This document shows positions 15,543-63,159 of a stretch of DNA of 64,000 nucleotides, piece by piece. Source of the stretch: Pecten maximus (lineage: Eukaryota); assembly GCF_902652985.1 (NCBI RefSeq), contig NC_047019.1, positions 25,730,001 through 25,794,000 on the forward strand. The letters are read 5' to 3'. Every line of letters starts with the position of its first letter. Positions within the stretch are counted from its first letter, which is position 1. The notes under the pieces were generated by a model. That model was not told the DNA's origin and searched no databases. It saw only the letters and a program-made list of their open reading frames with translations. The translations under genes were made by a program, and so were the position numbers.

Positions 15543-18500
15543 CTAAAAACTTGTGAGATCCTGGTTTTCGTCCGCGACTTCCTCGCCAAAGTCCAGCGTC
15601 ACTTCTGCGTCACACGAGGGGTCACTCTCCTGCATCATGGACATACTGTTCTTGTCCAGAGATGATATCGAGGTCGGGAGGGTCTCGCCGTTATAGGATG
15701 GGTTCTGGATCCCATTCTTAGTTTTGGCATTCATATCCTCTGACACCCTGCGTAGTATGTCTCGGTTTATTTCAAAATGTCCAGCCCTGGACTTCACGTG
15801 TCTACAAGACAAAAAAGATGCTTACTAATGCTGCAACAGGTGAGAGGTGTATTGTTTTCTTATTTTCAATGGGCTTCATTGCTCATCATACTCGAAGATA
15901 GAAGAAAATCCCGAAAAATAGTTATCTTGAAAATAAATAAATAGAGGAAAGTATGACACGCTTAATAATTTCCGTTAAAAAGATATCATTTTCACTTCAA
16001 ACATTTTTTAAACCGCAAAATTTGACTTATCAAAAGTATACAGTCTTTACAATATTTGCCCTGTGTATGTACATTGATATTGCTAATAAATAATACAAGG
16101 TTTATGGTATGTAAATGAGATGTTGGCAGCTGTGTTAGAATTAGGTCAGCATTAGATACAATATGCAGCATTACATATAATACAACTGTTGTATCGACAT
16201 AGACTAACAATCAATGGTAACGACAATCCGTAATGAAATGATATCATATCCATATCGACTCCTAGTATGATTGCCGACGCTTCTCAAAAAACAGTAATCT
16301 AGGTGTAAGTTTATTATGTATAAAGTATCAAATTCAAAGTGTATTCAACATTCTGAGGGAAAATACAAAAATCGAAGTAATTTAACATTGTCAAAATCTA
16401 TAGCGGTTACATGAATCATTTTTATATAAAAGTCACATGCATTTCTAATACATTATGAGGGTCAAAGCATTAGCTGTGAGATGAAAAAAGCGATAATTAT
16501 ATTCTCTAATATAATATTCAGAGTAAAACATGATGGAAACAATAAGCCACTAAATGAAGTGTAAATCATGATTTAGATTCATGAAACGAAATAAGAACAA
16601 ATGCCAGGTAGGTAAAACAATCGTCTTGTTTGCTCGGAGACGCATCAAGTAAATTTACATCAATGTATGTCTTGTCCTGATAGTAATTATATCATGGCAA
16701 CAACAACATCGAGTAAAATAAGGATCCTAATCGGATCTTTTTAAACAACACAACAAGATAAGTCATGTATTCTAATGGATAACTTTTAAAACGCGACAAC
16801 AAGCATGGATTTTAATAGAGATGTTTTTACAAACGATACAAGATAAGGTAGGAATTCTAATAGAGATCTTTTAAAACGCAACGCACAAGATAAGGCAGGG
16901 GTTTGAATAGATATCTGTTAACGTCACGACAAGCTCATATAGAGATTCTCATAGAGATTTTTTAAAACGTCACAACAAGGTAAGGTAGAGATTCTAATAT
17001 AAATCTTTTAAAACGCAACACAAGATAAGGTAGGGGTTTGAATGGAGATCTTTTAACGTCACAACAAGCTAGGATAGGGATTCTCATAGAGATTGTTTTA
17101 AACGTTACAGCAAGGTAAGGTTAGGGATTCCAATAGAGATCTTTAAAAACGCAACATAAGATAAGGTAGGGGTTTGAATAGAGATCTTTTAACGTCACAG
17201 AAAGGTAAGGTAGGGATTCTAATAGAGATCTTTAAAACGTACAAGGACTGATAGCATTTCTAATGACATCGTGATAACGGCAAAAATCTGTTTAGAAATT
17301 TGTGCGATACACATACATTTGTTAACACACATTTCACATGTTATATGTGACATAACCCTATCTAGGCTTTGTGATTTGGTACATTTGTACATTTCTTAGA
17401 CGATACAACCCCATTTTATATACGTGATTTTGTACATTTACACATTCTAAGATACAACCCTTCCTAGGCTGTTTGATTTGGCATAATGCGTCTATGACAA
17501 ATAAGCACAAAAAATGTAATAACAGTGTTCTACATTTATCAACTCTTATCACTTAAAAAGAAAACAATTTCAATGTGGCGACTTCCAAAGCAGAAAGAAA
17601 AAAACGTTCAAGGTTGATATCTAAACGTTTCATCATCACTAGATATCACCAATAGTGCAAATTTAAGCAGTGATGATTTATTATGAAAATGTTTGATATT
17701 TTTCCGATATATAAATGGTAAATTATAATAAAACGGCCACACTATTGTAACTACCAAGAGTACAGGCATAAACAGTGTATGCATGCAATACCAAAGTACA
17801 ATGTATTCAAATTATTACGATTTTCACGAAAGAAATACACAAATGTATATAAAGATATCAAAATATTCATATAGATAATGAAAATTTATTAATGAAGACT
17901 AAAGAAATTCATCAAAGCTTCTAATCGAAAAGTATAAAAGTCATGTTCGTGATTACAACATTGACGCTACTACATTTAAAGAAATGCATGCATGTCGAAC
18001 CTTAAATCTCTCCAGTGTTAGTATTTTATAGTTTGTAGTTATTAGTTCTGACTTTGCTCCTGAAATAGAATATGGCATAACACCAATTTTAGCTTGCATA
18101 TAACATAAAAACGGTTGTTTTTCAAGATCGTGCAAAATTGTTATGCAAAGAAGCAAACGTTATTTATATATATACCTCCCGATAAAACTAAGCTGTATAA
18201 CGTTACTGCACTACTGCAGTTTGTTTAAGTTGACGGTTGAAGCAAGTGTCTTTTCTACATTTGAAAACCATCTAACGAGAGTTAGATAAACATGATAGAC
18301 AGCCGTCATGTTTGTGTCACGAATTCTTCAACAACAAACTTATGAAATTAAAATCCTCCCATCGTAGCACCACAATTCTGATAGCCTAATCACGAAGTAG
18401 CAAAATTTAGATCACAATGGGGAAAAATTAGTATCTGCTATAAATATGTAATTTTACAAACATAAATATTAAGATGACAATCATTGTGCCGGTGCGTTTT

Positions 18501-21500
18501 ATTGATAAAACATTGTTTAAATGACTCCGCACAAATGTTCAAATATGACACCCGCGACGTCGGATGTCACAGCTAAATATTAGACTAATCACTGTCATAT
18601 TCAATTATCAGTCCGTTTCTGGAATTGGCAGGTGTGCTATCGTTGTTTATTGTGATGTTAAATGTTAATTCAAATATTGATTTATTTAAACACCGTGTAT
18701 TTCAACAAATATTTCGAAACAGTGCTTGAGGGCTGAACAATTTGACTATTTCACGAATGTAACTAACAGCATTAAATTGGAATTCAGTCATATATATAGC
18801 ATATACTGGACATGATGTTAGGGATCAAAGCCTGCAAATTCCATGGGGAAACTTTGGGTGATCAAATATGCATCAACAAATGGTTAATGTATGGAAGGTA
18901 ATGTCCCCTAGATACCCTAAATAATTTTCGATATTGGACAAAGAATAATCGTCCAATATTTTCACCAGGTCAAACATTAATATGTTTATCAAAATGAAAA
19001 GTATGTGCAAAGAATGTGTTTATGCATTCTGAAATTATCTAATGTCAATTAGCACCGTTATGATTAACTTTAAGGATGTGATAACAAACATCAAGTTGGT
19101 ATTTTATAGAATGGGCTTCCTTGGAAGTTTGTGAGTAATGCTGATATTGTAATGTAAAAGTAAGGAATTAACATACAAAGACACTGTCATCTTGAGAGTG
19201 TGTAAGGAGTAAACTACCCAGACGTACCTGGCACATATGATGCAGACTATGACAAAGATTATTAGGATCGCAGAAACGATGGACACGGGGACGATCACTT
19301 CAACTGAAACACAACGACATGATAAGTTCATACTGCGATAAGTTTTCGTCTGATGTTTATAATAAAATAATGAAATAAAAACAAATACAAATACCCTTTT
19401 TTTCCGAACAAAAAATAACTTCTGAAACTGATTTTTTAAACATGCTTACGTTTGTAGTTTTCGCCGTCCTGTCCTTGCTTTGACGTCATACTTGGTTTAG
19501 GTGATGTAAGTCCATCTGAGGGTGTCGCCGCCGTACTCGTTTTAGTCTGGACTGTTGTCGTGGTCAGTCGTTTAGTTGTTGTCGATTGTTTACTTGTTGT
19601 CATTGGTTTACCTGTTGTTTCAGTTATAGTTGTTGTCAAAAGTGAAGTCGTTGTTAATGGCTTAGATGTTGTCGATGGTTTAGTTGTTGTTGCAGAAGGA
19701 GTGGTTTTCAAGGGTGTAGTCGTTTTTAATGATGTAGTTGTTGTCAATGGTTTAGTTGTTGTCGATGCCCTAGTTGTTTTTGCAGTCGTTATTGTGGTTG
19801 ATTGTTGAGTTGTTTTCAATGGTTTTGTAGTTGTATTAATTGTCGTTGATGTACTTTGTTCTGTTGCTGTCGAAGGTTTATTTGTAGTGTTGGTTGTCGA
19901 TTGTTGAGTTGTGGTCGACGGCTGAGATGTTGTCAACGGTTTCGTTGTTGTCTTAGTCGTAGTCGTTGTCAATTGTTTTCCTGTTGTAGTTGGTTGTTTT
20001 ACAGTTGTTGTTAGTTGTGTGTTCGTCGTTTGTGTACTCAATGTTGTTTCCTGTTGAGTTGTTTGTTCTGTTGTTTTTGTTGTTGATGATGAACTAGATA
20101 CGGTGGTTGACTGTGAGGTTGATGTTGATAATGCCGAAGTTGTTGTCTGATTAGTTGGTGATTGCGTTACTGGTTTTGTTGTCGCTTCTGTTGAGGTTAG
20201 AGTAGATGTTATTGTAGTCGACGCGGTCGCTGTGCTTGATTCTGGTTCCTTTGTTGTTGTTGCCGCGGTGGTGGTGGCGGCAGCGGCGTCAGTAGTAGTA
20301 TTTCCGGTTGTGCTACCAGTTGGATCGCTGCATTTCATAGCTATATGACCATTCGCACCTGCAAAAGATGTTACTTAGAAACAATCACATCTGAAAACAT
20401 AAAACGTTATCGAATTGTATTTATAAACTGTGTATATTATGCATGTCGAAAACGAATCATAGGAGACGAAGCAAAACTATAATTGATTGTATCTAGTATT
20501 CGTATTTTTTCAATCCAGAGAAAAGATCCCGTAGTCGTGATGAAGAAGATTAAAAGGTTTATGAATAATCTTTCCTATGTGCTGCATTTTAAGTGAAGAT
20601 GTAATTGTATCTTTTGACTGGTTTGAAAACAAGTATGTACTGAAACACAACAATACTGTTTGAACAGGTAGCGTATTGTATGCATACTTTACTCTGTCCA
20701 TTATTTATAGAACGTACATGTATCAGAAAAGGATTGCTTGTTTCATAAGTAAATATATCATGTTGACGCTTCTCAAGTTATCCCTCGCGAGATATTGTAA
20801 AGTGTCGTTCCAATATGGCACGGCTACATACGTAACGATATCAATATATAAAATCCATACCTAGCGACAGGACCATGCAGTATCTGGTATCGAAAGGATT
20901 TGTCTCCATATGGAAGCTGACATCTATTGTATCCCCATTGTCTACAAGGATATTACCATTGATGTAGCACCTTTGGCTGACAGTGGTACTCCCTTTAGTT
21001 AGCACTAGGCGACTTCCACAGTTAGGATAGTTAGGTTGAAGGTCGACATGAGGGGAGAGAAAGATGTCTGAGGAGGCCACAGTATCCAGAGTAACAGTTG
21101 CTGTACAAAAACAAGTGGATGGTTTGGTCTGTCCCTCCGCCGTGTACGTGTCAATGATCACTCTCTTCCCTGATACTTCGGAGTTGGTGCACATGGAAGC
21201 CACTACGTAACATAAAGTATATCATATTTACACAGTTATATCATATATATTTACATTTGCTCCGCAATTCTCATTGACACAATGTTAAGAGGCAGTTACC
21301 ACCTTACGCCTGTAACACCCAGTGGGTCATGTGACATTTAAAAAGATTGTTTTCAGGTTTTTTAAAGTTGACAAAGATGGTAAGACTAAACAGTTGTTTA
21401 ATGTTGTTATATTCGATATAACAGCAAGATATATGGTAGGTAAATGCAGCATGGGAACCTGTGAGATTTCCCCACCATAGGTAGGGTTCCCATGCTGTAT

Positions 21501-24500
21501 TTGCCCACCATACATTAATTACAAACACTAATTAATTCCCCGACCAGTTAATATCAAAGGTCAGACTTTAAACAGTGTACTTACCTCTTGTTACTGATTA
21601 TATGAGTATAAACATAAAAATGGATGTTGATCATAAAGAAGCTATGACCATATGAAGCAATATAATTGTGTTTTAATGCATTTGCAAATCAAATGGATGA
21701 ATTTGATAAGTGTGTTGAAGTGCTATCTGGTACAGAATAAGTTTAATGTGTGTGGTAGATACTCATCATTACATGGAAATTTCATTCGTGATTCCATCAT
21801 CTCTATATATTTAGAATATCGTGTTCATACTGATAACAAAATTATCTATATCACAAACAATATCATCCCCTGTAAATAGTGATATTGCCTTAACACTAAA
21901 TTAAGACAACGGTAATCCAAATTTCTCATCATCCAGCCGTCACTAATCTGAATTCTACACTTCCAAAACAGACATTTTAACAGGATGTTATTAAAATTGT
22001 GCAATTTATTAAGCCATCTCAAACCGGATCATGGAGGCATGAAAGGTCCATTGTCAGAATCTTACCACTAATGTAGTCAGGACATGACCGGATTGGGGAG
22101 GATAAAATGTCAGAATATAATCTGGCATCTAACTACACATGTACGGGCGGAGACTATTCTTTTATAATCAAACTACTAGTGAAGAAACAATATGATTGGA
22201 TTACGGAGGTTCCAATGTCAGATTCTAATTACTGATGTAGGGATGACATCGCCGAATTACGTAATTACTGGTGTAGGGATGACATCGCCGAATTACGTAA
22301 CTACTGATGTAGAAACGATATAACGTGATTATAAAGGGTCCGGTGTTATAATTTATACATTGATGAGGAGACATTAAATATTGAGGTTAACCGGTCAGAT
22401 TCTAACAACTGATAGAGGGTAAACAAGGTCAGATTACGGAGAATCTGCTGTCAGACACTATAACCACTGACCAAGGGACAGCATCACCGGACTATGGAGG
22501 CTAACCGATCAGATACTAATAACTGATAGAGGGGAAAACAAGGCTGGATTACGAAGGCTCCACTGTTAGAATTTAATTACTGATGTAGGGACGATATGGC
22601 TGGATGGATTATGGCGTGTTCACAGTGTAAAACTGAAATGAGTGCCGATATACCGGAAGTTGCTGTAATGTTGTTGGTATGTATTTTTGCGATAGCCATG
22701 AAACAATATTGATTTATGCACAATTACAGATAGCTATATCCTGTTATACCCAGTACAAAATATTACTTCAATTATATATAATCGATAATACAGCGAGCAT
22801 TGGTTTGAAGGACAAATGGGTCAATATTGTATTTATACATTGAACAGCCAGACATGCAACAAGAGCCATTTCCATGTACAAGTAGTTAATATTGACAAAA
22901 ATATGAAGTGGTGACATACATAGAAAGAGTGACATTGGATCCCGTCACATACATTGCACCATCGGTAGTACACACCGTGCAGGCACCCTGCCCATCACCA
23001 ATACTAGTATAGCAGTATAGCATGCTTAGAATGCAATCAGAAAAGCAACTTAAGGCTATAAAGGGGAAGTTTTATAAATTGTACAATCTGTGACTATTTG
23101 GATACTAATTGACAGAAATTAAAAACAAAAATACCAAATACCATCGCAACTTAACCATGATCTTGTGAAATGCATCACTATTTTTGTGAACATATTACGT
23201 TTACCTTTAGGAATGGCTAAGGAAGAACAATACGGGTAAAATTAGGTCCGTTATAATGTAGATTACAATGAATCATTAATTGGATTGACATAACATTACA
23301 ATTAATAAACTGATTACAAATTACTGTTTTTCTTGTATCATTCATGCAATTCATACAGAAAATTCAAATATGCACATGTACACATGTCTCTGAAATTAAA
23401 TAACATTACTGGCAATTTACTTCCATTCTGTGACTAGTTTTTTTTACTTTATATTACCTCATCTAATGATATTTTTTCTCGTATATTTTCATTTCATTAT
23501 TTTCAACATAAAATGACAATCGTATCTATTTGACAATACAAAGTTCTTTATATTATTTATTGTACATATATAATATACCCATCAATGCAGAAAACATGCA
23601 ATGTTACTTACCTGGAATAAGACCCGAGGTGTCTGTAGAAATCTCTGCAAACTGAGCACATAACGTTTGTCCTTGTATATCTGTATGAAGGGAGAAACAC
23701 AGGTAAGTAAAGGAAAGTTATAGTGTAAACCATCACCGATATATTTACTTCCGGGCAAGTCATGTCCATACAAGACAAAAATGAATACCAATACCTTGTT
23801 TTCCTCAATAATAATTAATGATATGAAGCTCCAACGTGCTTCTTTATTTACCAACTTTGTCAACATTGCGAAATAAAATGATACAATGTAGTTGATGGTA
23901 AAATCTACGGAAGCTTAACGCCATATTTCTAGAGACTGTTGAAATTGAAACATCGCCAACAAAATAAAGTCTTCCCATGCTAACCAGTTAATGAAAAATA
24001 TGAAATGTAGAGATACTACTAAAAATAGTTGATAACATATTTACTACAAGCTGTTGATAGGAAATTGAAATCACTGAAGTGTAGACAACAAGTTTTTTAT
24101 CTATTGTTGTGGTAGGCGCATTTTATATACAATATTCAAAAACAAACCAATAATTCAGTGTTTTTATGAAATATTTAAAGGATATGTATCTTTATTGTAT
24201 TATAGACATACCCGTCTATAAAAACAAGGAAGCTTATTAGCCATGTAGCATTGCTAACTTCTATTGACTACCATTCCATTGTCTGAAATTACACGGTTGA
24301 TTGAATAAGAGTGAAAGTGAAACAGAGCATAGGACTAGGACTTACCTGTCCTCTCCTCGCGACATTTTAACGGGGCTTTGTGTTATAAGGGGCATTGTAA
24401 ATCCGTCCTAGCGATTCCATTGTACACGCAATAGTAGTGTCATATGATATACATCACAAAACACATGTCCCATTCAGTCAAATCTTTATGGAAAAGAAAG

Positions 24501-31852: not shown

Positions 31853-34800
31853 TCAGACACCGGTATTCACTTCAGCATATACAACATTCCCCGAGTCTGC
31901 TTTCGGTTTTGGGCTTACGGGAGGTGGGCGTGACTTCACCCGTGACTGTGGGCGTGACGTTTCGTCCTGAGCACTCACTTCCGCGTACACTAAACCGTCC
32001 GCATTTCTATACCGAGACGGACGGTTGTCACCACTTTCATTACCGGTCTTTTCTTTTTTTGATTTGTTAACGACAGCATAAACATCTCCCTTCGGAGTTT
32101 CCTCTAGTTCCAATCTGTCAATTTCAGTGTCTTTTATTGTGGAATATTGATCTGACTTTCGCACCTGTGCGTACATATCGCCCGTTCCCGTGACTATGTG
32201 ACTGTCGTCCGGATCTCGGGGTCCGGCCGATTCATAGAGCGAGTTGTGAGTTATTGTGTCCCCGTCAGAGTTGACGTATTTCTTCATGGTTCCTGTGATA
32301 GCGTACGGTTGGATGTCACCGTCATAACCGTCATTCGTATTGCCGTTAGACGTGTTCCCACGGTCAACTGGCTGATGAATGTCTGGTTTTCTTCTCCTGT
32401 ACAAAAAAGTGATCTGTTAAAATCTTTTGTAAAATATGACACTTTCAAAGAAAAGCAATGTAACAACTTCAAAACTTCAAAACGCACATACAGTTAATTG
32501 TCAATAAAGCTAACAGTATAGTTGGACTGATAAGAAGATGTTCAAAATGCTTTTTAAAGCTCTAGTTAGACCACCACCTTGAGTATGCTGCAAGTGTTTA
32601 AAACCCATCAAAAGTAAAAGATATAGAACTCCTTGAAAATATGCAGAGAAGGGCAACAAAACTGATCCCTGGATTTAAAAATATCTCGTACCCGGAACAG
32701 CTACAACGGTTAAACCTCCCAACGCTACAACACCATAGGACCAGAGGAGATATGATTAACGTTTTTAAGATATTAAATAACATGTACGATAGTAGAATAA
32801 CAAAAATTTTTTTTTCCAAATGGACAATATGAGTAGAACCAGAGGTCACGATAAGAACATATCCAAAAGCGATGTCGTCTTGATGGAAGGACACATTTTT
32901 TTCAGTTACCGAGTTATTGATTTATGAAATAGCTTGCAACAAATTGTTGTCAATGCTGATTCTGTCATAAAATTTGAAATAATGTTAGATGGTCATTGGA
33001 AAATAACCGTTTTTATTCATGAATGTACAGGAACTAATATAAAACCATTAATTACACAGGAAATATTTTTATCATATGACTACCGTTATATACGGTGTCA
33101 TAAACCCATCACATAAATTTTCTTTATGACACTAGGTAATAACACCTTTCGCTACGCTGATTGGCTGGTTCCGTGAGAACTGTATTCATACGCGTGGGAA
33201 CGACCTACTTCTTTTTACTACGACTCGTAAAAATGGCGACTAGTGCTTGTAAACTTTGAAAAAAAATCAACTGAACGACAAATTGGTCTATTAACATAAC
33301 ATATTGTACAATCAAAGATAAAATCCAAGATGTAAACATCCTAAGTTTTTTAATTATATTTATACTATAAGATGTTAAATTAGGCCTGGCAAACATCTAT
33401 TTTATGACCCCTAGTAACATATTTCAACTCCGATAGAAAATTGCGGTTGCGTTGTCCGATGAGACATATCTAGTCTAGATTCTTTTCAAATAAACAAATA
33501 ATAACATTATTTAATAAAATCTTCATGAAAAACGGCAATGTAGTTTGTTACAACTTGCCTTCAACGGTTACTCAGAATAACATGCTGACACTGTCGTCGA
33601 CAAACACGTGTAATGTCAAAACAAACAACACTGCCAACAAATCGGCATCCAAAGTCGCTTTTCACGGCAGTCTGAACACAATGTTCAGTGGGAATATTCA
33701 CGGTGGAACATTTCACATCTCCAAAAACTCCCGCGAGGACGAGGATAAACACAAAGCAGTGAAAAGGCGCCGTACAATGGTTCTGTACGACAGCGACAGC
33801 GAATAGACATTTGTACAAGCCTCCATTATCGCGCCAAGTGACGTCACGGCTTCGTCACATCAAAAACAGTCGCTCATGAACTTTCAAACTAAAATATTTT
33901 CCTCATTGTTTCAAACACCAAGGACAATTTATCTATTATAGATTAAATGAAAAAATGCTGAAATTTTGTTTTGAGACGTTTATTTAATAAAATGAATCCT
34001 TTTCAAGAGTCAGTTGTGTTAGAACTATTTCTTCTCTCGTCGGTATAATTGACCTACTTCGAAGGTTCGGGTGATTTGGTTGAGATGTGACGATTCAAGG
34101 CAAAAGAAAAAATCAGTTTTTGATGGGGAACGATGAAAGAAAACTTCATATGATAAAAAGAAGCTGTCATTCGTTTCCCTTCATATTAGATTTATGATAC
34201 TCGTTTAGAATTTTTTATTTTTGCTCGCCAGAGGCTCGCAAAAATAAAAAATTCAAAACTCGTATCATAAATCTAATATGAAGGGAAACTCATGACAGAT
34301 CCTCTATATATTACACTATGTATTGATATGGATATGGATATGGATATAGAGGCTACAAGCCTGCGTCCATTATTTATGCTAATAAATGCTAATAAAAAAC
34401 ATGATATCACGAACTCAAAACATAGGAAAATATATTTAAACAAAATATAATACGTTGTTTTATATGCTAGCTATTAGAACATGAAATTTGGTTTGTACAC
34501 AAAACAACAAAATACATTCCATTTTGTAATTTACTTTCTGTTCATGTTTCTGCTGTATGGTAATATGCCTACCAGGCACCTGTCATTTTTGTTTACAAAT
34601 AACGGGCCTAGAGATAGGCATACAAAAAAAAATGGGTGAATTAACCAAGTAGACAGACGGATTTTTCCATTCATTTATTGCTTTAAACCTTACGGTTTAT
34701 CAGTACAAATATTTTCAGTAAATACATGACAAATATTTACATAAGATACACACAAATGGTACCTTACAAACACACAATGACCACACACACAGAGACTACA

Positions 34801-40800: not shown

Positions 40801-42876
40801 AAAATATGTTTAAAAGGTGCAAAGCAGCAATTTTTTCGACCGCTGACTATAGTTCTCGGGGCTATAAATAGCCCCAGAGAACCAAAAACACTTCAGTTGC
40901 TTACCTGGCGAAATTAAAATACAATGTCCTGACTTCCATTGTGTACCATTTTCTGCCCTGGTCAACGTCAGCGTCAACATGTCTGCTGTCCCGAAATTGT
41001 CCACCGACGTAGCAGGGATCGGGCTACAACCGGTCTCGGTAAAACCAGCAGATGTAGTGGAGGTGATACGAAGTTTACTTGCACAGTTAAGATCTGTTTC
41101 TACTCCCGGATATTCCTGTACTGTCACTGTTGTTGTACGTGATATTTTCGTATTCAGTGTAACGGTACATGTACAACTGTATATCCCCGGGCCTCCCGTA
41201 CCCCAGGTGTCTATTACCATACGTGTGTTATATAGTATCGCCTCCTTGACACATAGTCATAACTACAATTGCAAACAAGAAATAAATATAATACATTTAA
41301 TTCAATACCATTCCCGACAAATAGTAATTACACTCTACTGTGAATTTGATCCTGCCTTAAAATTCCTGTAATTTCTTAAACATAGGCAGCAAATTATATT
41401 AAATTATTCGTTCTCAATTGTTCTGTTCTAAAACATGTTGAAACTCTTATCATTATTTGTGATATTTTTCCTTGTCTGATTGTTTTTAATTCCAGATAGG
41501 TTTGTTAACGGAAACCTAATCTCCTGGTTCCAGATTCATCAATTCACGGTAAAAAAAATAGTTATGAACCTTAATGCGTTCCTATGGAAAATGTTAAGCT
41601 AAGAATGTTATTACGTTAAAGAACGTTAATGAAACTGGAGCCAGATAATAATAGCATACCGTGATTAAAATTTTCTAGCTTAGTCTGATCCGTACATGGC
41701 GTTGTAATGATCCCTGTAATAGATACTTTACATCAACATTGATATAGAATAATAATTTTGATCTACATTGAATGTAAAGTAGCATGAAATGAAATAGAAA
41801 GTTGGTGTAATTGTTATCCATACACATGGACTGCATTTATATAGGAACGCAGTCAGTACATTAAAATAGAGCACCATTTAACATGCAAAACAAAGCTAAA
41901 CAAATAAATGTAAAAATTGTTAATAAAACTCGAGCGGAAAGTATAAACAAAAACATGGTTAACATGTTGGTGGTTTTTTTATGAGGATAATAAAACGAGA
42001 TATTCCGGAAGGGTAATCGTAACCCTCGCAGCTCACATCCTCAAAGCTAATCTAGGATAATAGATTATTTTCAGGTGAAATCATGACGACCATTGACCTC
42101 TTGCTCACTCTCTTTAAAATCATATTTCTAAGCGTCTTTCTTAGCAGTCGACATCTTTTACGAGGAATAGTGATAGTTAGGACTGGTTTTAGAATTTTAT
42201 AACATAAATACATAATAGCGCATAAAACGATATCCTCGTACGTATACGAAAGGGAAAATTGAAATAGATTTCAGTGTGATGAAAGAGGTGCATGTTAAAC
42301 TACATTACCAATACCAATATTGGTGTCAAATCACACCGAGTGAGTCATTGGTAATTTTCATCAGAAATTACACATTCACATATCATAACTGTATTAAAAA
42401 ATCCAATGACATGATTATTTTTTTTATTTATTTTCATTGTTTATATTGTTTGACAGATAATACCACACACGTAACGTGGAACCTAAAATAAAACATGTTG
42501 AGCCTTGTAAATAAACAAATACAACTAATCGCTGAACACCCAGACAATACTTTCATGTGTTATAATCGTACAGATCACGCTGCAATAGTATGTTATTAAC
42601 ATAGATTTTATTCGGCGTGAATATTAGAATACTAGTATATACCTCCTCATTATTTACAGCTTCAAACATGTAACATGGCATCATGTACTATATTTAATAG
42701 TAATAATAGTTATCAACATCTTAACTTTGTCACACAATAATTTGATCAGTAGTGTCAGTGAAATCGCCTTTGATATTTACTTCCGCATCAGAGTTACCTG
42801 TAACACACACGCTGAGAAGTAACCACACAGACGTAATTACTGTCAGTACGCTGAGCTTGTCCTCCCTGCCTCTCAT
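31853..42876 (-). CDS. Receptor B: ITIM-bearing type-I membrane protein, about 471 aa if one +1 frameshift in exon 3 is corrected (possible pseudogene). Exons 42876-42798, 41713-41660, 41262-40905, 39206-38904, 38144-38066, 32396-31853
   Basis: Signal MRGREDKLSVLTVITSVWLLLSVCVT; 8-Cys domain; Thr/Pro stalk; TM GIIAGTAGGGGLLVVIAIIVGVVIS; tail with DMYAQV, DVYAVV, LVYAEV and VVYAEV. Exon sizes 79/54/358/303/79/544 compare with 79/55/357/222/79/514 in paralog C. Confidence 0.82.
32525..33050 (+). mobile_element. CR1/L2-type LINE 3' fragment; its tail resumes at about 34310-34400 after a nested insertion
   Basis: LVRP.LEYAASV, then ENMQRRATKLIPGFKNISYPEQLQRLNLPTLQHHRTRGDMINVFKIL, characteristic of the CR1 ORF2 C-terminus. 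A tandem ATGCTAATAA tail lies near 34376-34396. Confidence 0.85.
33058..34309 (+). mobile_element. Internally deleted Crypton-like element nested in the CR1
   Basis: Flanked by a 7-bp direct repeat ATTACAC (33051-33057, 34310-34316). Subterminal inverted repeat TTTTTATCATATGA / TCATATGATAAAAA. Long 3' hairpin at 34164-34298. Relic ORF 33525-33806 (MFSGNIHGGTFHI..KRRR..DSDSE) resembles C-termini of Crypton tyrosine-recombinase proteins; family assignment is from recall. Confidence 0.6.
34850..35120 (-). mobile_element. 3' fragment of a non-LTR retrotransposon (RTE-X-like C-terminal Cys/His motif)
   Basis: RLSSHKLNIETGRY..NRMCTYCDSGDVEDAYHFIVKC. Confidence 0.75.
35121..35563. repeat. Three near-identical tandem copies of a 147-bp unit
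   Basis: TTGACATTTG recurs at 35147, 35294 and 35441. Confidence 0.95.
36760..37730. repeat. 22-bp minisatellite (ACATCTGTTTAACCTGTACCCT)n with a homogeneous 54-bp higher-order core at about 36880-37140
   Basis: Visible directly; the core gives the 18-aa periodic ORFs at 36864 and 36875. Confidence 0.95.
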
Positions 42877-44463: not shown

Positions 44464-44464
44464 T

Positions 44465-44555: not shown

Positions 44556-44558
<3 letters not shown>

Positions 44559-53381: not shown

Positions 53382-56300
53382 TTATACTCCTCCGTCAGTG
53401 TTAACTTCCGAATATATTACTCTGTCAGCGTCAGGTTTTGGTTTAGGCCTGACTGGAGGACGAGACTTGGGACGAGATGTATCATCTATCTCCGCGTACA
53501 CTAAACCTTCCTGGTTTTTATATCGAGAGGGCCGTCTATCCTCATCCGTTTGTGATTCATCGTTCCTGTCGTCTGACTGTTTCCCTGGCTTATTTACAAC
53601 GGCATATACGTCGCCAGAGGGAGCTGTCACTGCATGTCCTCGTGTTGAACTGTTTGAATGTTCTGTCTCAGAATTTTCATTTGTTGCTGGCTTCTGGACC
53701 TGCGCATACATATCGCCAGTCTCTGTGACAATATGGTTATTATCCGGAACGCGTGGTCCCGCCGATATGTAGAGAGAATTTTGAGTTAGTGTGTCTGAAC
53801 CTTCGTCATGATAAAATTTTGGTGTTGCGACAGCATAGGGTTGGATGTCCACAGAGAAATTTTCCTCGGGGTTCTTCGCATCTGAACGTTTTTTCCTATT
53901 AAGAATAAAGTATTAAGTACATGTATAAACAATTTCAAATCACCGATCCACGTTTAAATATTTACGTATCGTCAACGTCTTTGTCGTATTTTGAACTGTT
54001 GTGTTATCGTGTTCGTTTAAGTTCGTACGTGTTAGATTTCTAAACAGTTTATTATGAAGCACACTATACAATTGTATAATTATGGTAATAAGCTATGCAA
54101 TTATTTCATTTCATAATCATATCTGTAGATTACACTATATATATAGCACTGGGTTGTTCTGATTTTGATATCAATACATCTGTAACGTTACATCTGAAAT
54201 TATCTGCCTTATTATCCAGTAAGTAGACCAATGACTATACTATTAATACTACAATGCCGCTAAGGGCGATGCCTTTACATGTAATTATCTAATCATTGCT
54301 ACAATAACGATAATAAAGACGATGGATATTTACTTACTACTACAATGATAAGGACAATGACTACAATTATCTTATTGTTATTACATTGAAGATGATAACA
54401 ACAATAACTATACGTACATTTTTATTATTATAATGACGATGATAAAGACGATGACTTCACTTACCTCAGTACTATAACAATGACGATGATAAGGACTTGA
54501 CTGCATTTACCTTATTATTATTTCAATGAAAAAGATAAGGACGACGAATAGCATTAGAGCAATGACTACTTACCTAATTATTACTACAATGACGATGATA
54601 AGGACGATGAGTAAAACTGCACCACCGCCGGCTGCTCCAGCAATAATCTCCACTAAAACAGATACTAGTACAATACAAACACTGGCACCTCAACATACGG
54701 TACAGCATGCTCAACATATTGAAACAAACACGAGTGTTATTTACAAATACATTGTAGGCCTAGTTATCGCGTTCATGTATTTACTGAATCACAAAGGTTT
54801 CACTATTTGCGTGCACTAAGTAAGTTTGGACATTTTCTTAGCTGTCATGTTTACGTATATCGTAGCTTTAAATATAATTTAAGTAGGAACAGGACTATCA
54901 TGTGTGTTATGTGGAAATGTTTCTAAGATCCGTGTACCTATAAAAACAGATATCACTTACCTCCTATTGACGACTCCTTTAATTCTCCGTTGTTAACATC
55001 ACCATTACCTTTACCCAATGTACGATTGGTAATGGTCTGTATGGAACTGGAGCCGGTAGTGATCGACGTCGTCGTCGGTGTCGTCGTTGTTGCTGTTGTC
55101 GCCGTCTTTGTCGTCGTCACAGAAGTCGACGGAGAGCTGTCTGATCCGCGCGGTGCATCACAAGTTACATTTAAAGTAACATCTATCAAAGAATGGTTAC
55201 CGTGTTACGTGAAGTGTTAACGCAAGTGCGGGAAACAATGAAAATCTTATTAAGAATCAGTGTATAGTTCAGGTCGTATAATAGTATTTGTCACACTACA
55301 CTGAAGCTCAAGAGAAAATTGAATGTTTAGATGATTAGTTACCAAGTACGTAGATTACATAACCTCGAAACGATTGTCATTAAGCCTTGATCTGACAAAA
55401 TAAATGCGTTCTTGTTCACAATAAATATAATCTGACATGAGTAGCTCGGCTGGGTCATGTATGTGCGGCTAGTTCTTTTTGTTTTGATTTTGTTTTTTAT
55501 CAGCAAAAGCCGTATTGATAGATTAAAAGATGCATTATTTGATGTGAAACTTTTTATGCATATCTAGTTCTGTGTGGAACTGTGTGTCTTACCAAGAGGT
55601 ATTGCCTTACTATGTATACCCAAGTTTGAACAAATACGGTTAATAAATGATATGAAATTGAAACAGAATTACAACAGAAACTTGCATTACATATGGAATA
55701 TCGAAATATGGAGTATTTTAACATATCAAATAACTCAATATATACATTTATATTGCATGTGTATTTACTGGTAAAACTCGTTAAAACCTAATCTTACTGA
55801 TTGATGTTAGCTCTATATTATGTTATCCGAGGCGACGTGCGAAGGTCAACATATCACCAAAAGACGTCATACTACTATTATTAATTATTACTTACCTGAT
55901 TTAATGAAGATACAGTACCCGGATTGCCACGGGATGTTGTCATCTGATCTGGTTAACGCAATATTGTAAACCTCGTTGATTGTAAAGTTTGTGATGATGT
56001 CCCCACTAATTTGCTGACATTGATATTCTGTAAATGTATTTACAGGAAGCCTGGTAAATCTTAGTTTACTTTTACAATCAGACGCCGGCACTGTATCAGG
56101 ATAAGCATTGATGTCGAAGCGGACGGGAATCGTATGAGCCACAGTCAGTCTAACTGTACACTGACAACTGATGTGTCCTAACCCTCCTGTGTCGTACGTA
56201 TCAACCACCACACGGCCAGCAGTTAAAGTCCCACTCCTACACATCGGTACCACTGTAAGGTCAAATACATCTCATTAAAATGTACCAATATTGATAATAT

Positions 56301-57127
56301 GATGTTAAGTTAGGGTTTTAATGCTATAGCAGATTCACTTTTTTTATTCTAACGTGAATAAGAGAACAAGAACACAGTTGCAATGGATATTTTAGAGGAT
56401 TTTTTATATACGACCTTAGCTGAACACCATCATTATATTAAATTCTTAAGGTTGTTTACCTCCATCACATTTATCAACGGTATATCTTGATACATATTTG
56501 TTTAACAGTGAAAGGTATTGTAATGAAATCATACTCATGATTTTGCAATCAATTATTTATATATGAATTTGGGTGTTATTTATCAAATGTAAAGAAAATA
56601 TAGATCAGACCCAAATACAGTAAATATAAAGAGATCGTTGGGAGAGTATGATACCGTTTGTGAAGCCGTCCTGGTCAGCTTCTATCAGTGCATATTGTTG
56701 ATTTGATACCTGGAAATTGATGTATAGAAACAGTTTAGAGAAGTACTTGACTCTCTGAAAAGTAAGTATTTTGAAGTACATGTAGCATGTTCGATTAACA
56801 AAACTCTTTTGATTTAACATATCACTAGTACATATATATAACCAGAAAACAGGTCAATGACCCTGAAATTATACGTAACCCTACTGGTGTGGACCGTTAC
56901 AAACCCGTTCAATGTGTTATTACTTCCTGTATTGACTAATCTGAGCCTTCTGAAAAAAAAACATTGAGCACAAATTTACGATCTCAGTATGACGTTTCAT
57001 TTAAATACATTACATTTTCAGAATACTTCCTGTTTACAGAAGACCTACCATGATAATGGAAACAGACCAGTATCAATAGCAGCAGACCAATAGATGATGT
57101 CTTTACCTTGATGGCAATGCGACACAT
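53382..57127 (-). CDS. Receptor C: ITIM-bearing paralog of B, about 434 aa if one +1 frameshift in exon 2 is corrected (416 aa if exon 2 is skipped). Exons 57127-57049, 56709-56655, 56252-55896, 55182-54961, 54652-54574, 53895-53382
   Basis: Signal MCRIAIKVKTSSIGLLLLILVCFHYH; the domain exon aligns without gaps to B; TM EIIAGAAGGGAVLLIVLIIVIVVII; tail with DMYAQV, DVYAVVNKP, LVYAEI and VIYSEV. GT..AG introns with the same phases as A and B. Confidence 0.84.
54230..54610 (-). repeat. Degenerate tandem repeat of about 45 bp built from the 3' end of receptor C's TM exon plus its splice donor
   Basis: Minus strand repeats GTCCTTATCATCGTCATTGTAGTAATAATTAG|GTAAGT-like units, with extra AG|GTAA donors near 54510 and 54464. 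Confidence 0.8.
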
Positions 57128-58875
57128 ATCTACCGTAAGTACAAACCACTTCTGTCGTTTACGTCACTGTCTGAAAAATGTCGACATCAAAAACTTCACA
57201 GTATATATATAGTCTTAGACTTTGTTTACAAACCACAATCATACTCTAGTGTTAAGAGACTGTCTAAATATAGACGTCCAAACTGGTTATACGCCGGTAT
57301 TAAATACGTGAATATATAACCTGTTCAAAACCACTGGAGCGAGACGTCACCAACATTCGAGTTTTACACAAGGGAGACAACACGTATTTCAACAGCACGA
57401 CGGTGAGAGCTTCTATCATTTTATTTATCAATACAAATTACAGTGTACTTTTTATAACATTTTATTAAAATTCAGAAATGTTAATTGCATATTTACATAT
57501 TCGAATATACTCATTGAAATGCTCTAGTAAACAGTACAAATAGAAATTGATGACAAGGTATGTGCAAATTAAAATGTGCTTAATACCATTTTATTAAATC
57601 AGGAATACATTTACTATCTTTTGGGGGAAGCTTGAAATGTCACTCAAAGCTAAAATAGATTTGATAACTCATTTTAAACTTTATAACAGTTTGTACAATC
57701 AGTCTAACTGGTTCGAGATCTGATGGAACAGGACTTCCCTCTAACGGTCCCTACATTCGATGTAATAGTTAACAGCATTGATATAATAGCTTTAACCTTT
57801 TAACTAAGCTTTTACACAGTGATTATATAATTTGTTAAGGAAACGAGGTATATTGTTCTTTAAATATGATGAGTGTGCCAAGCTTTTGATTCCGGATAAT
57901 TGTATGTGAAAAGTTTGCCAACACTAGTGAGAATCATATCATTTTTATCGTTAAATTTAATCTGATAATGATAAGACTGGAGAGAATTGCAACTATCAGA
58001 CTTCATACACTCAGTAAGTACCAAACACTTCCAAAACTGCATTTTATACGTGTTCATGACAGAATCATGACTAACACTTTCAGTCTAGTCGACCTTTGGC
58101 ATTTGGTCCTCTTGTTCATAATACTCACATATTTTCTGACTTTTTTTATGTAAGTAGTTAATTTAAAGGTTTCAGCAACAGGATGGTCCAGACATACTAA
58201 CCTTATCTTTGTTCAATTCAGTACACTTTGGAATCATCACCTCCTATGAGAGAACCGCATAGAGACTGTCATCTACATTGTAACTCTTCACACAGAGATC
58301 ATGGGTTAATTTCTCACGTGCGTACTTCGGCCACACATCAAAGTCTATCGTGCAGATTTATCAACGGTTTTAGACCAAAACAAAACACTTTATATTACAG
58401 TTGTCTAGAAAATAGGATGTGAAAATTGACAATTTGCTGAAACCGGTTTACGTTTATCGAAGAATATACTGGTAATATTTCGTTCTGAAATAGATTTCAT
58501 TCACATCAACTAGGAATAGGTAAATTTGATTAGATCGATATAAAATACCTCTTTTTACATCGGAATGCCATCAAAGTTGAAATGTGTATTTGTGCTTTTT
58601 ACAACATTACAAGCGAAGTACATTAATGTGTTTCAGACATATATTTTATTTCTTTTTCTAAAACTCTCTCTGTAAATCAAAACCCTCTTTGTCAGTCGCT
58701 GCGGCGCTAACCTACCCATATTTAATGCTTTTTAGATAGATTCACAGTAACATATATAAACCCGGAAGTTAAAATACCACATATGTAAGCTTACATTAAA
58801 AGTGAACGTCAACAAGCGGAACAGTCAGTACACAAACTGTAAGTAAGAAACTTGTCTAATAACACACAGACAACG
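57128..58875. promoter_or_regulatory. 1.75-kb divergent (head-to-head) intergenic region between receptors C and D
   Basis: Near D: TATATAAA (58753-58760), ETS site CCGGAAGT (58762-58769) and ACCACA. Near C: TATATATA (about 57202-57211), TGTTTAC and RUNX-type AACCACA (57231-57237). Confidence 0.5.
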
Positions 58876-61800
58876 ATGTTGTGGAGTAGTGTTTGTGTCG
58901 CCATCACTCTGTACAAAGGTATGGTATTTGTTTTAATTCTTCACATACATACTTTATTGTATATAGCGACAACCTTGTTCAGCCTTGGCAGCTAGACTCT
59001 GTAGAACCATCTTGTTCTATAATTAGGGCACTGTATCTGATATGTTGACTATTGTTTCGCTATATCAAGAAATAATTTCAAAAACAAATTACTTTTTTAG
59101 AAATCATAGTTCTTCAGTTTTGAGGACGATGTTTGACCGAATCATCTTAGGGTTATGGTTCTTTATATTTTGTAAATTTATTAACTCGGTTGTCTCTTAC
59201 AAGATTATTTGTATTTGTTTAAATATTTTCCTTTTACCAGTGCTCGTATTGTCATCGTTAACATCTATATCAACAACAGACGCATGGACTACAACTACCG
59301 ACCAACGGACTACAACAACCGACCAATGGACAACAACTACCGACCAATGGACAACATCTACCGACATATGGACAACAACTACCGACCAATCAGCTACAAC
59401 TACTGACCAATCGACTACAACTACCGACCAATTATCCACAACAACGTTCATCACAACTACGACCCCACCTTCTAGAAACTCTTACACAAGCACCTCCATA
59501 ACTGCATCATCTGAAGCAGGCATAACAACTTCAACGGCGACTACAATGACATCTACAGACACCGAAAGAAGTACTGATACCAAAATCGTGACATCAACAT
59601 TCGGGCCCACTATATCCACGGAATCCACATCAGAGACAAGAACTACCGTTGAATCCACAACTGTGTGTCCAACAGACACATTTCCGTATGGTATGTATAC
59701 TATCTTATAACAAGAGATCGCAGAGGGATCTTGGCGCCAACCATTGAATGATCTTTATAGGTTCCATGTCAGATTGATCTTTTCTATACTTTTCCCTTCC
59801 TCTAAGTCTTACTAATCTGTGTAAATTCAGAAACAGCCCTCTAGTACTTTTCAAACAAAGGGAACCTATATAACAAATTTAAGATTTAGCGATAATGGCT
59901 GTATGTCGGCCATGTTGTTTTCAGATTGGTCCAAAAATGCAATATGCATAACTATGCACCGAGGGGAACCTACATATGAAATTTGAGAAAGATCCCTTCA
60001 ATACTTTCGGAGAAATAGCGATAACAAAACTTCAATTGTCAAAATCCAAGATGGCTGCCTGTCGGCCATGTTGTTTTTCTGATTGGTCTCAAAATGCAAT
60101 ATGCATAACAAGGCACCGAGGGGAACCTACATATGAAATTTGAGAAAGATCCCTTCAATACTTTCGGAATAATAGCGGTAACAAACTTCACTTGTCAAAA
60201 TCCAAGATGGCTGCCTGTCGGCCATGTTATTTCCTGACTGGTCTCAAAATGCAATATGCATAACTAGGCACCAAGAGGAACGTACATATGAAATTTGAGA
60301 AAGATCCCTTCAGTGCTTTCTGAGAAATAGCGATAACAAACTTCAATTGTCAAAATCCAAGATGGCTGCCTGTCGGCTATGTTGTTTTCCGATTGGTCTC
60401 AAAAATGCAATATGCATAACTAGGCACCGAGGGGAACCTACATATGAAATTTGAGAAAGATCCCTTCAATGCTTTCTGAGAAATAGCGATAACAAACTTC
60501 AATTGTCAAAATCCAAGATGGCTGCTTGTCGGCCATGTTGTTTTCCGATTGGTCTCAAAATGCAATATGCATAACAAGGGACCAAGAGGAACCTACATAT
60601 GAAATTTGAGAAAGATCCCTTCAGTGCTTTCTGAGAAATAGCGATAACAAACTTCAATTGTCAAAATCCAAGATGGCTACATGTCGGCCATGTTGTTTCC
60701 TGACCGGTCTCAAAATGCAATATGTATAACTAAGCACCAAGAGAAACCTACATATGAAATTTGAGAAAGATCCCTTCAGTGCTTTCTGAGAAATAGCGAT
60801 AACAAACTTCAATTATCAAAATCCAAGATGGCTGCCTGTCGGCCATGTTGTTTTTCGATCGGTCTCAAAAATCAATATGCATAACTAAGCACCAAGGGAA
60901 ACCTACATATGAAATTTGAGAAAGATCCCTTTAGTGCTTTCTGAGAAATAGCGATAACAAACTTCAGTTGTCAAAATCCAAGATGGCTGCCTGTCGGCCA
61001 ATTTGTTTTCCGATCGGTCTCAAAATGCAATATGCATAACTAGGCACCGAGGGAAACCTACATATGAAATTTGAGAAAGAATCCTTCAATGCTTTCTGAG
61101 AAATTAGCGATAACAAACTTCAATTGTCAAAATCCAAGATGGCTGCCTGTCGGCCATGTTGTTTTCTGATTGGTCTCAAAATGCAATATGCATAACAAGG
61201 CACCGAGGGAAATCTACATATGAAATTTGAGAAAGATCCCTTCAATACTTTCTGAGAAATAGCGATAACAAACTTCAATTGTCAAAATACAAGATGGCTT
61301 CCTGTCGGCCATGTTGTTTTCTGATTGGTCTCAAAATGCAATATGCATAACTAGGCACCAAGGGAAACCTACATATGAAATTTGAGAAAGATCCTTTCGG
61401 TGCTTTCTGAGAAAAAGCGATAACAAACTTCACTTGTCAAAATCCAAGATGGCTGCCTGTCGGCCATGTTGTATTTCGATCGGTCTCAAAATGCAATATG
61501 CATAACTAGGAACCAAGGGAAACCTATATATGAAATTTGAGAAAGATCCCTTCAGCACTTTCTGAGAAATAGCGATAACAAGAATTGTTTACGGACGGAG
61601 GGACGGACGGCCGGCCGGACGGACGGACGGACCACGGACCACGGACCACGGACGCAGGGCGATTTGAATAGCCCACCATCTGATGATGGTGGGCTAAAAA
61701 AGCACATATTGATTTTTTTAATACATAGATTCCAGGCCTATACGATGTATCACATTATTATGTTATCGCCTTTGATCTTTGTATAAACACATCTTATCTT

Positions 61801-63159
61801 AAAATTTTATTTTAAAATTTTGGGATAAAATTTTCAAAAAAAACCAGATAAATTTCCATAATAAGTATCATCAATCTACTATATAGTTATGGAGTGTAGA
61901 TATTTAGATAATAAAGAAACCAGAAAACTATATGGTTCTAGCTGACAGGAAAGCTTTGTTTACAATATATTCATATCAGCCATCAGTCTTACAGAAATGT
62001 ACATTTGCATGCAAACAACATATATTCATTCATACAACCTGAAGTTATATATCATAATTAGAAATATCTTCGTTACCACTATGATGTAGATCGTTCGTGA
62101 CATCATGTTGCTCAGTAAGGGATATTTTTACTCCTTCCGAGAATACTTTCTTTCGTACATTCGGGAGTTGCTTATACAGTCTGTCCATTTTACCAAAGAG
62201 TATATAAGGTAAAATACAATGTTTAATCTATCCTCGTTATTTCGAAACTAGTTGGGTCAGGCAATCGAGGTACTCGAATTATCAGAGCTCGAGATAGCGA
62301 AGTTTGACTGTAGTTCAATTGAAATACTATAGTAGAACAAAACATGACACGTTTTAGCTATATTACAGTCGCTGTTATCGTCCCTGTCGTGGTAACAATA
62401 CTGATCGTGCTGCTGGCTACAGGAGCTAACGTAATCCTCTACAGACGGTATGTATGACCTATATTATATATATATTATTTACAACTTTTCAATTCTTTTC
62501 AATAAAAAACTACCATTTTACAGAAAAATGGAAAGCAAATCCATGTCACCGTATCTGGGGCAAATAGAGCGTACTGTTAAATTAATAAACGGCTCCTAAA
62601 ATCCCTTATCATAGAAAATACTCCTTATTCACGGGAAAGATAACGGTTACATTATCTATAATTCATTTTGTTTTTCATACATTGATGTTTATCAAATTTA
62701 TTTCAAATATCAAACGAGACACAAGCGATTGCTCAGAACGTTAAACATCATTTTTGTTTTATAACTAAATGAAGGTTCAAAGAACGTCATTTTATCAATG
62801 AGCATGATACCCATGAGAGTTGTGACAGAGTACATACAACATACGAAAGCGCATCATGGAATATTTTAACATAACTCTTTTAAGAAGAGATTCACTTCAT
62901 CTAAGAATCCCATTGTCATTATTACCTTACCTTAACTTTAACGTTTTGTAGACGTCTTGCTCTGGCACAAAAACCGATGAACGCTTATGGCGTCGAGACA
63001 CCAACTCCTGCAACGTATGAAAGCCTTGGTGTCAACAGAGAAAAACCATCCGAGATGTACGATGTAGTTGGTAAAGACAATGCTAAAACACCTAGAATTT
63101 ATGAAAATATGAGCGCCACTACTGAGAACCAATCAGATATGTACACTGAGTTGACATAA
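58876..63159 (+). CDS. Receptor D: mucin-like type-I membrane protein, 259 aa, with a multi-tyrosine ITAM-like tail. Exons 58876-58918, 59241-59690, 62369-62447, 62952-63159
   Basis: GT..AG introns with phases 1,1,2; total 780 nt = 260 codons. Signal MLWSSVCVAITLYKVLVLSS; Thr-rich ectodomain; 79-nt TM exon VAVIVPVVVTILIVLLATGANVILY-RR; tail with YESL, YDVV, YENM and YTEL. Confidence 0.85.
59285..59435 (+). repeat. Coding 21-bp minisatellite (7 copies of TTTTDQW-like) in the receptor D ectodomain
   Basis: ACAACTACCGACCAATGGACA-like units in frame within exon 2. Confidence 0.9.
59708..61702. mobile_element. Satellite-bearing non-autonomous element (Helentron/pearl-like) with about 11 internal 155-bp repeats, in intron 2 of receptor D
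   Basis: Starts AACAAGAG; AAAATCCAAGATGG-type anchors recur every 155-156 bp (60041, 60197, 60352 ... 61439); then a (GGAC)n microsatellite, the terminal hairpin TAGCCCACCATC-tgat-GATGGTGGGCTA (61669-61696) and an A-run. Confidence 0.88.
62255..62312. mobile_element. Terminal fragment of a Tc1/pogo-like MITE
   Basis: ...CTCGAGATAGCGAAGTTTGACTG-TA is the reverse complement of a TA-CAGTCAAAC-type terminus; no partner end found. Confidence 0.4.

Follow-up and report, generated by a model that had tools for sequence, protein, structure and literature searches.

A candidate paired-receptor-like family of mucin-stalked, CUB-fold membrane proteins in bivalves

Introduction

Paired receptors, in which one binding domain is combined with opposite signals, are central to the regulation of natural killer (NK) cells and myeloid cells in vertebrates, and they are thought to have arisen under pressure of pathogens on the inhibitory receptors. 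Exchange of binding-domain exons is known from the Siglec-5/14, SIRP and CEACAM1/3 systems, and to our knowledge all well-described paired receptors use immunoglobulin (Ig) or C-type lectin folds. Here we analyse a stretch of 64,000 nucleotides from the scallop Pecten maximus (C5:25730001-25794000 of a 918-Mb assembly in 3,983 contigs; referred to as the window, whose own numbering is used unless a C5 or megabase position is given) that holds four neighbouring genes, A to D, for predicted type-I membrane receptors. A first-pass annotation of this DNA had proposed a paired-receptor cluster on a CUB-like fold, with inhibitory motifs of the immunoreceptor tyrosine-based type (ITIMs) in the tails of B and C, repeats resembling the corresponding activation motif (ITAM) in D and a trafficking-type tail in A. 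We consider it rather probable that these genes belong to a bivalve family of CUB-fold, mucin-stalked, paired-receptor-like proteins that forms part of chromosome-wide clusters. The encoded proteins would comprise, in order, a signal peptide, an eight-cysteine domain of CUB (jelly-roll) fold, a mucin stalk with O-glycosylation, a single membrane span and a tail with tyrosine motifs.

The exon models were re-derived from the DNA by splice-site scans, inspection of AG/GT boundaries and frame checks. Searches used single exons, and full-length proteins were taken only from database models (P0071, P0074 and their relatives).

Results and Discussion

Ectodomains shared between two tail classes

The membrane spans and tails of the family form at least two unrelated modules, class I, which is found in B and C, and class II. 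Each of B and C has a class II-tailed partner on C5, 2.2 Mb away, at 27.96 Mb for B and 27.98 Mb for C, with an ectodomain that is 79% (B) or 84% (C) identical to its own. In Mizuhopecten, the ectodomains of ITIM-tailed and class II-tailed forms are likewise 88% (C type) and 79% (B type) identical, whereas forms that have the same tail share only 53-65% ectodomain identity between species. In a maximum-likelihood tree the ectodomains cluster according to species and not tail type. A clade made up of the ITIM-tailed ectodomains is rejected by an approximately unbiased (AU) test (p 5e-8 for C and 2e-7 for B), the clades tested having been picked after the identity matrix was seen.

At the DNA level the partners resemble each other in the domain exon only, over 387 bp at 91% identity for C and 368 bp at 85% for B; nothing alignable was found in the flanking introns or the other exons of the partners. 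Synonymous divergence (dS) between partners is 0.14-0.19, compared with 0.88 between B and its syntenic orthologue in Ylistrum, a value available for B only. The class I tails show dS of 0.81-0.93 against Ylistrum with a ratio of non-synonymous to synonymous divergence (dN/dS) of 0.24-0.36, as in ordinary orthologous divergence, and the dN/dS of the domain exon is 0.55-0.76. Two more ectodomain lineages show the same association. The third (P0009 type) carries both tail classes across species, and the fourth is represented in Mizuhopecten by neighbouring genes whose ectodomains are 77% identical; one has an ITIM tail, the other a tail of YENM plus YEGL-x11-YEVL.

Because the similarity stops at the exon, the ectodomains group by species and the partner dS is low, the simplest reading is that the domain exon has repeatedly been exchanged between the tail classes by exon-restricted gene conversion. 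As far as sequence comparison goes, the data support an ectodomain evolving in concert across tail types, which is the defining evolutionary signature of vertebrate paired receptors. The paired-receptor cluster of the first-pass annotation survives in this altered form: one ectodomain type is found on two tail types and evolves in concert, but the partners of B and C lie outside the window and, since D has no such domain, the pairing is not with D.

Gene organisation

Three of the genes, A, B and C, are encoded on the minus strand; D is on the plus strand, in head-to-head orientation with C. The cluster extends from the stop codon of A at 15543 to the stop codon of D at 63159, in agreement with the limits first assigned to it. 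From 5' to 3', all four genes have a phase-1 signal exon (a candidate in C, tentative in D, and one of two candidates in A), phase 1-1 ectodomain exons, an exon that encodes the membrane span and runs from phase 1 to phase 2 (76 nucleotides (nt) in A, 79 nt in B, C and D), and a single tail exon. In A, B and C the eight cysteines of the domain are distributed over three exons, with Cys 1 in an exon of 54-69 nt, six in an exon of 342-357 nt, and Cys 8 opening the stalk exon.

The common exon plan and the shared eight-cysteine domain had both been proposed earlier, and both are present in the DNA. RefSeq models P0071, which corresponds with C, and P0074, which corresponds with B, match the boundaries read here from the domain exon through to the stop codon. 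In relatives, contiguous spliced frames on 1.4-kb contigs assembled from public sequencing runs indicate that in other scallops splicing follows the predicted plan. In B and C a 5' ectodomain exon is frame-broken as assembled.

Tail modules

The class I module has a Gly-rich span and a tail of ~165-200 residues. In the tail, the conserved motifs PYA, SLYxSAGP, GD(M/L/V)YAQV and GDVYAVVNK come before a pair of ITIMs; a Pro-rich linker separates the two, and the second is close to the C-terminus. These ITIMs are LVYAEV and VVYAEV in B, and LVYAEI and VIYSEV in C, all of which fit the consensus [SIVL]xYxx[ILV]. The ITIMs attributed to B and C from the outset are therefore canonical, two in each gene; they are 27-44 residues apart, at positions that are conserved in three scallop genera, Pecten, Mizuhopecten and Ylistrum. 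A more distant class I tail is found at 10.96 Mb.

The class II module has a span of the form V-P-I/V-V...N-V-I-L-Y and a tail of ~55-70 residues with YxxL/I, YxxM/I and YxN motifs; in tails of 52-58 residues, V(H/V)YDS(L/I) is followed after ten residues by Y(E/A)(E/D)(M/I/T) and then by Y(V/A)N(T/M). A variant tail, seen in another lineage, has YENM followed by YEGL-x11-YEVL. YEEI is the optimal site for Src-family SH2 domains, YxN is a Grb2 site and YxxM a p85 site. The span and tail of D align to class II with one 14-residue repeat added and, judged by this alignment, D is a diverged, domain-less copy of the class II type. Its tail reads YESL-x10-YDVV-x10-YENM-x10-YTEL. The ITAM-like repeats described in it are real as four YxxΦ motifs with a 14-residue period, but their spacing lies within a relaxed ITAM spacing of x6-12 and outside the canonical x6-8.

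Fold of the ectodomain

An AlphaFold model of the domain, built from 36 diverse family sequences, has a predicted local distance difference test (pLDDT) score of 88 and a predicted template modelling (pTM) score of 0.82. It replaces an earlier model from nine sequences (pLDDT 63), which was too uncertain to use. In a structural search against representatives, CUB domains account for 14 of the 16 matches with Z >= 8 (Z 8.0-9.3), and include those of Kremen (Z 9.3), MASP-1 (CUB2, Z 9.0), the neuropilins, C1s, TSG-6, cubilin, Neto2 and PCPE-1. The structural alignments cover ~100 of 118 residues with a root-mean-square deviation of 2.6-3.2 Å. The best Foldseek match is to a spermadhesin CUB domain, and the language-model neighbours of the domain are CUB clusters too.

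The model therefore points to a CUB (jelly-roll) fold, and the earlier description as CUB-like is correct as regards the fold. It is not established, on the other hand, that the domain is a member of the curated CUB sequence family. The domain and tail exons of A, B and C have no meaningful Pfam match, with no CUB match at E<=1, and of the 36 family members one matches CUB_CDCP1_1 (E 7e-4) and none matches the curated CUB profile PF00431. The family conserves eight cysteines (1 + 6 + 1 over the three exons), compared with four cysteines and two disulfides in CUB domains. An Ig-like reading, which came from the UniProt automatic name of some relatives and from weak matches in the PDB, was discarded since the structural matches favour CUB; the PDB profile search gave only non-significant matches to Ig light chains (rabbit kappa constant, E 0.26-9).

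Proposed mechanism and alternatives

A bolder reading, which we consider less likely than not, is that the paired-receptor principle was invented independently in bivalves on a third fold, CUB, beside Ig and C-type lectin, with the domain exon continually homogenised between genes with ITIM tails and genes with ITAM-like or YxNM tails. In the favoured reading, both tail forms would most likely bind a common ligand through the CUB-fold domain. Once phosphorylated, class I tails would recruit tandem-SH2 phosphatases of the SHP or SHIP type and damp signalling, and class II tails would recruit SH2 proteins of the Src/Syk, Grb2 or PI3K type and drive it. The result would be a paired-receptor system akin to CEACAM1/CEACAM3 or Siglec-5/14. 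An oyster NCAM1 homologue, an Ig-superfamily protein with two ITIMs, is reported to act through SHIP2 (PMC11841013), so that the machinery for ITIM signalling plausibly exists in bivalves.

Several observations weigh against this proposal, in addition to the after-the-fact choice of the AU-test clades and the poor match to curated CUB profiles. The exact tail type of B and C is present in only two copies in the genome, B and C themselves. In class II, the first motif, VHYDSL, itself fits the ITIM consensus, the spacer within the ITAM-like pair is 10-11 residues, not 6-8, the second motif is YxxM in some copies, and no charged residue is found in the membrane spans. The activating-type label that had been given to the tail of D is weakened by these class II features. 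D was also said to lack the eight-cysteine domain, and indeed no remnant of a domain exon was found upstream of it, which leaves D without a ligand-binding domain; its mucin exon found no match in the protein database over a length range of 83-262 residues, and no independent model. Single-base insertions break the frames of B and C, as described below. Finally, every tyrosine motif in the tails also fits the endocytic signal YxxΦ, NPxY being likewise a sorting signal.

This last observation is the basis of an alternative that we regard as unlikely, namely that the proteins are endocytic or scavenger receptors, in which the CUB domain binds cargo, the YxxΦ and NPxY motifs are AP-2 or Dab-type sorting signals, and the different tails set different routes. 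A membrane-proximal NPxY is present in A and in several A-like relatives, and the LDL-receptor class A repeats seen by eye in the relatives P0039, P0041 and P0057 recall cubilin, LRP and Neto. Sorting signals, however, need neither the L or V at position -2 of the two distal class I motifs, nor their spacing of 27-44 residues, nor the Pro-rich linker, all of which are conserved in three genera. Homogenisation of the binding exon between tail types is, moreover, what is found in signalling paired receptors.

The state of B and C gives rise to a second alternative. In C, the small exon with Cys 1 has 55 nt, compared with 54 in three other copies in the genome (L002, L003 and L004). In B, the domain exon has 358 nt instead of 357, one base more than in the paralogue L006 and in the intact syntenic orthologue of Ylistrum balloti, and an in-frame TAA follows ten codons in. 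As a result of these insertions and premature stops, neither RefSeq model has a signal peptide: P0074 (B) starts at an internal Met, and the N-terminus of P0071 (C) is an out-of-frame artefact in which the small exon is read in the wrong frame. On the assembled sequence, the two genes would be pseudogenes (recent or polymorphic) or null alleles, unless the insertions are assembly errors. It could be, then, that the locus is idle in P. maximus, with B and C pseudogenes, D a domain-less remnant and the tail motifs relics. The +1 insertions and the truncated RefSeq models are in keeping with such decay, as are the dN/dS of the domain exon and the fact that D is not among the predicted proteins in the 83-262-residue range. 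Nevertheless we think it improbable, since each gene has one lesion only, the remaining exons of B and C are open, the tail motifs are all intact and the tail dN/dS against Ylistrum is as low as 0.24-0.36. The broken exon of C, being symmetric (phase 1-1), could be skipped without a change of frame, and single-base indels are the commonest error of long-read assemblies.

Two placements considered for these exons were rejected. The Cys 1 exon of C was first put near 56832, where there are no splice sites, and the true exon was recognised by comparison with P0001. In B, an alternative acceptor (AATAG, near 41212) would keep the frame but delete the first strand and one cysteine, and was judged unlikely.

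The least likely of the alternatives is a lineage-specific family of an ordinary kind, made up of mucin-like proteins for adhesion or matrix sensing and shaped by duplication and exon shuffling with no antagonism between tails. Relatives do bear automatic names such as mucin-like or cell-wall-sensor-like, and a phase 1-1 exon design favours shuffling. Yet at least four ectodomain lineages, in two to four species, show the pattern independently of one another, and a partner dS so far below the orthologue dS needs ongoing exchange or selection, not a single shuffle. We retain a paired-receptor-like family as the favoured reading.

Distribution of the family

Among 1.84 billion proteins, a profile of nine domain copies has matches at E<=1e-3 in 64 cluster representatives. 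All 20 of the looked-up representatives that have a source name are from bivalves (Pectinidae, Ostreidae, Dreissena and Solemya), and the genera represented are Pecten, Mizuhopecten, Argopecten, Ylistrum, Crassostrea, Saccostrea, Dreissena and Solemya. Their automatic names include uncharacterized, mucin-like, cell-wall-sensor-like and CUB domain-containing. The first-pass annotation had recognised no named family, and our literature searches likewise found no paper on a bivalve CUB-ITIM family or on its gene names. To judge from these searches, the proteins are a previously undescribed, bivalve-specific family of type-I membrane glycoproteins, known only from bivalves.

Mapping of copies and synteny, as had been suggested, places the P. 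maximus copies along one chromosome, at ~10.96, 11.55, 18.26, 25.61, 25.73-25.79 (the window) and 27.95-28.02 Mb, and shows that the order of the C-like and B-like genes is conserved in Ylistrum. The copy at 25.61 Mb is a further domain exon (C5:25611132-25611485, plus strand), ~119 kb upstream of the window and 46% identical to the P0063 type; together with the sites at 10.96, 11.55 and 18.26 Mb, it indicates that the family is strung along one chromosome. At C5:27950001-28020000 there is a second cluster (L011-L017) of at least five family genes, in which all those that can be typed are class II-tailed, including the partners of B and C. RefSeq P0001 (XP_033741803.1), a C-like gene, maps to C5 with every exon 100% identical and has an atypical last exon, which suggests that it is mis-modelled or has lost its tail.

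In Ylistrum balloti (L010, JAUZWB010000045.1, 900219-924274), a C-like gene is followed by a B-like gene in the same order and orientation as in the window. The B gene there is intact at its 5' end, yet its RefSeq model, P0006, likewise takes an internal Met as its start. Three relatives, P0039, P0041 and P0057 (Dreissena and relatives), have two LDL-receptor class A-like segments, read by eye, between the domain and the mucin stalk and span, and their tails are very short; the family would then include a second type of architecture.

Gene A and other features of the window

Gene A belongs to the family by its domain, which matches relatives with E values down to 4e-23. No homologue of its tail was found in the genome or among the family representatives, and no orthologue of A was found within 10 kb downstream of the Ylistrum B gene. 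The membrane-proximal NPxY recurs in several A-like relatives. The tail does contain the NPxY motif (NPSY) and the C-terminal end -TSF, a putative class I PDZ ligand, on which it had been called trafficking-type, and that designation rests on these two short motifs only.

Just downstream of A, a single-exon open reading frame (ORF) of 698 residues (7463-9559, minus strand) has Pfam matches to the Mab-21 nucleotidyltransferase and Mab-21_C domains, is TPR-like in its C-terminal part, and is a cGAS-like (cGLR) gene. An ORF at 473-934 (plus strand) contains ~15 tandem copies of an eight-residue unit of the SYTTDPPS type; it may belong to a further Ser/Thr-rich gene or be simply a minisatellite. 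A run of N occupies 5209-5370. The 5.7-kb intron between the membrane-span and tail exons of B contains a 147-bp repeat in three copies (98% identical) and a 22/44-bp minisatellite, at 35119-35563 and 36759-37671, and an ORF at 34910-35122 that, as an impression from its sequence, may be a mobile-element fragment. In D, most of the intron between the mucin and membrane-span exons is filled by a 155-bp satellite (10.9 copies, 92% identity, 59895-61581). The coordinates of all exons are given in Table 1.

Table 1. Exons of genes A to D, with their positions in the window.
Gene	Exon	Position	Strand	Basis
A	Tail; whole cytoplasmic tail with NPSY, ends -TSF and stop	15543..15801	-	Acceptor TTGTAG, frame open to stop; single copy in genome
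A	Membrane span, 76 nt, phase 1 to 2	19228..19303	-	AG/GT boundaries, frame checked
A	Ser/Thr-rich mucin stalk, 909 nt, opens with Cys 8	19450..20358	-	Read from DNA
A	CUB-fold domain, six Cys, phase 1-1	20861..21202	-	Matches family members, E down to 4e-23
A	Small exon with Cys 1, 69 nt, phase 1-1	23612..23680	-	Splice-site scan and likeness to segment of relatives
A	Signal exon, two candidates	23866-23749 or 26135-26087	-	Upstream of small exon
B	Tail; ITIMs LVYAEV and VVYAEV, conserved DMYAQV and DVYAVVNK	31853..32396	-	DNA and RefSeq model P0074
B	Membrane span, 79 nt, phase 1 to 2	38066..38144	-	Agrees with RefSeq P0074
B	Mucin stalk	38904..39206	-	DNA and RefSeq model
B	CUB-fold domain, 358 nt, extra base near 41240, in-frame TAA 41230-41228	40905..41262	-	Alignments to paralogue L006 and Ylistrum orthologue
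B	Small exon with Cys 1, 54 nt, intact	41660..41713	-	Read from DNA
B	Signal peptide, phase 1	42798..42876	-	Resembles N-terminus of Mizuhopecten P0073
C	Tail; ITIMs LVYAEI and VIYSEV	53382..53895	-	DNA and RefSeq model P0071
C	Membrane span, 79 nt, phase 1 to 2	54574..54652	-	DNA and RefSeq model
C	Mucin stalk	54961..55182	-	DNA and RefSeq model
C	CUB-fold domain, 357 nt, intact	55896..56252	-	91% DNA identity to class II-tailed paralogue at C5:27.98 Mb
C	Small exon with Cys 1, 55 nt, frameshift, in-frame TGA 56677-56675	56655..56709	-	Alignment with L002, L003 and L004
C	Candidate signal peptide, phase 1	57049..57127	-	Read from DNA
D	Tentative signal exon, 43 nt, donor GTAAAT	59129..59171	+	DNA only
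D	Mucin stalk, 56% Ser+Thr, without CUB-fold domain	59241..59690	+	Read from DNA
D	Class II membrane span, 79 nt, phase 1 to 2	62369..62447	+	67% identical to membrane span of Mizuhopecten P0004
D	Tail, diverged class II; YESL, YDVV, YENM and YTEL every 14 residues	62952..63159	+	Read from DNA

Comparison with known systems

If the family does form a paired-receptor system, the principle would be convergent, and older or more widespread than has been assumed. Its signature, in which two tail types go with clustering, broken copies and a concerted evolution that does not extend beyond the binding exon, would then be the mark of a pathogen arms race or of a system for self-recognition in an animal that lacks adaptive immunity. 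It would also provide mollusc immunology with candidate inhibitory and activating surface receptors, of relevance to disease in farmed scallops and oysters. Should the tails turn out to serve for sorting only, or the copies in the window to be dead, what would remain is only a new lineage-specific family of mucin-like receptors.

With the vertebrate KIR, LILR and NK-complex (Ly49, NKG2) families, the scallop genes share clustering, fast evolution, ITIM-bearing members and the spacing of their ITIMs, frequent pseudogenes and lineage-specific expansion. The activating members of those families, however, have a charged residue in the span and signal through an ITAM adaptor, whereas in the scallop proteins the span is uncharged and the motifs are in the protein's own tail. 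CDCP1 (CD318/Trask) is also a type-I protein with divergent CUB-like ectodomains and tail tyrosines, which in CDCP1 are phosphorylated by Src-family kinases. It differs in having three CUB-like domains and no mucin stalk, ITIM pair or paired partner, and we regard the likeness as one of type. The tandem ITIM/ITSM tail of PECAM-1 (VQYTEV, TVYSEV; ITSM denoting an immunoreceptor tyrosine-based switch motif) binds SHP-2, and the VIYSEV of C and the two-motif layout resemble it at the level of motifs only, the ectodomains being unrelated.

Outside the vertebrates, published accounts of Hydractinia Alr and of Botryllus fester and uncle fester describe gene clusters with ITIM-like or ITAM-like tails that are tied to self/non-self recognition. 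Both systems are, in these accounts, genetically linked to allorecognition, and the Alr proteins are Ig-superfamily-like, whereas the scallop family has a predicted CUB fold.

The closest parallels are with CEACAM1/CEACAM3, Siglec-5/14 and SIRP alpha/beta. In these, as in the scallop family, nearly the same ectodomain is combined either with an ITIM tail or with a tail that has ITAM-like tyrosines of its own, and the ectodomains are kept similar by gene conversion that is limited to the binding-domain exons. The scallop proteins differ in having a predicted CUB fold instead of an Ig fold and a stalk of mucin type. Their partners are 2.2 Mb apart in Pecten, but in one Mizuhopecten lineage they are adjacent.

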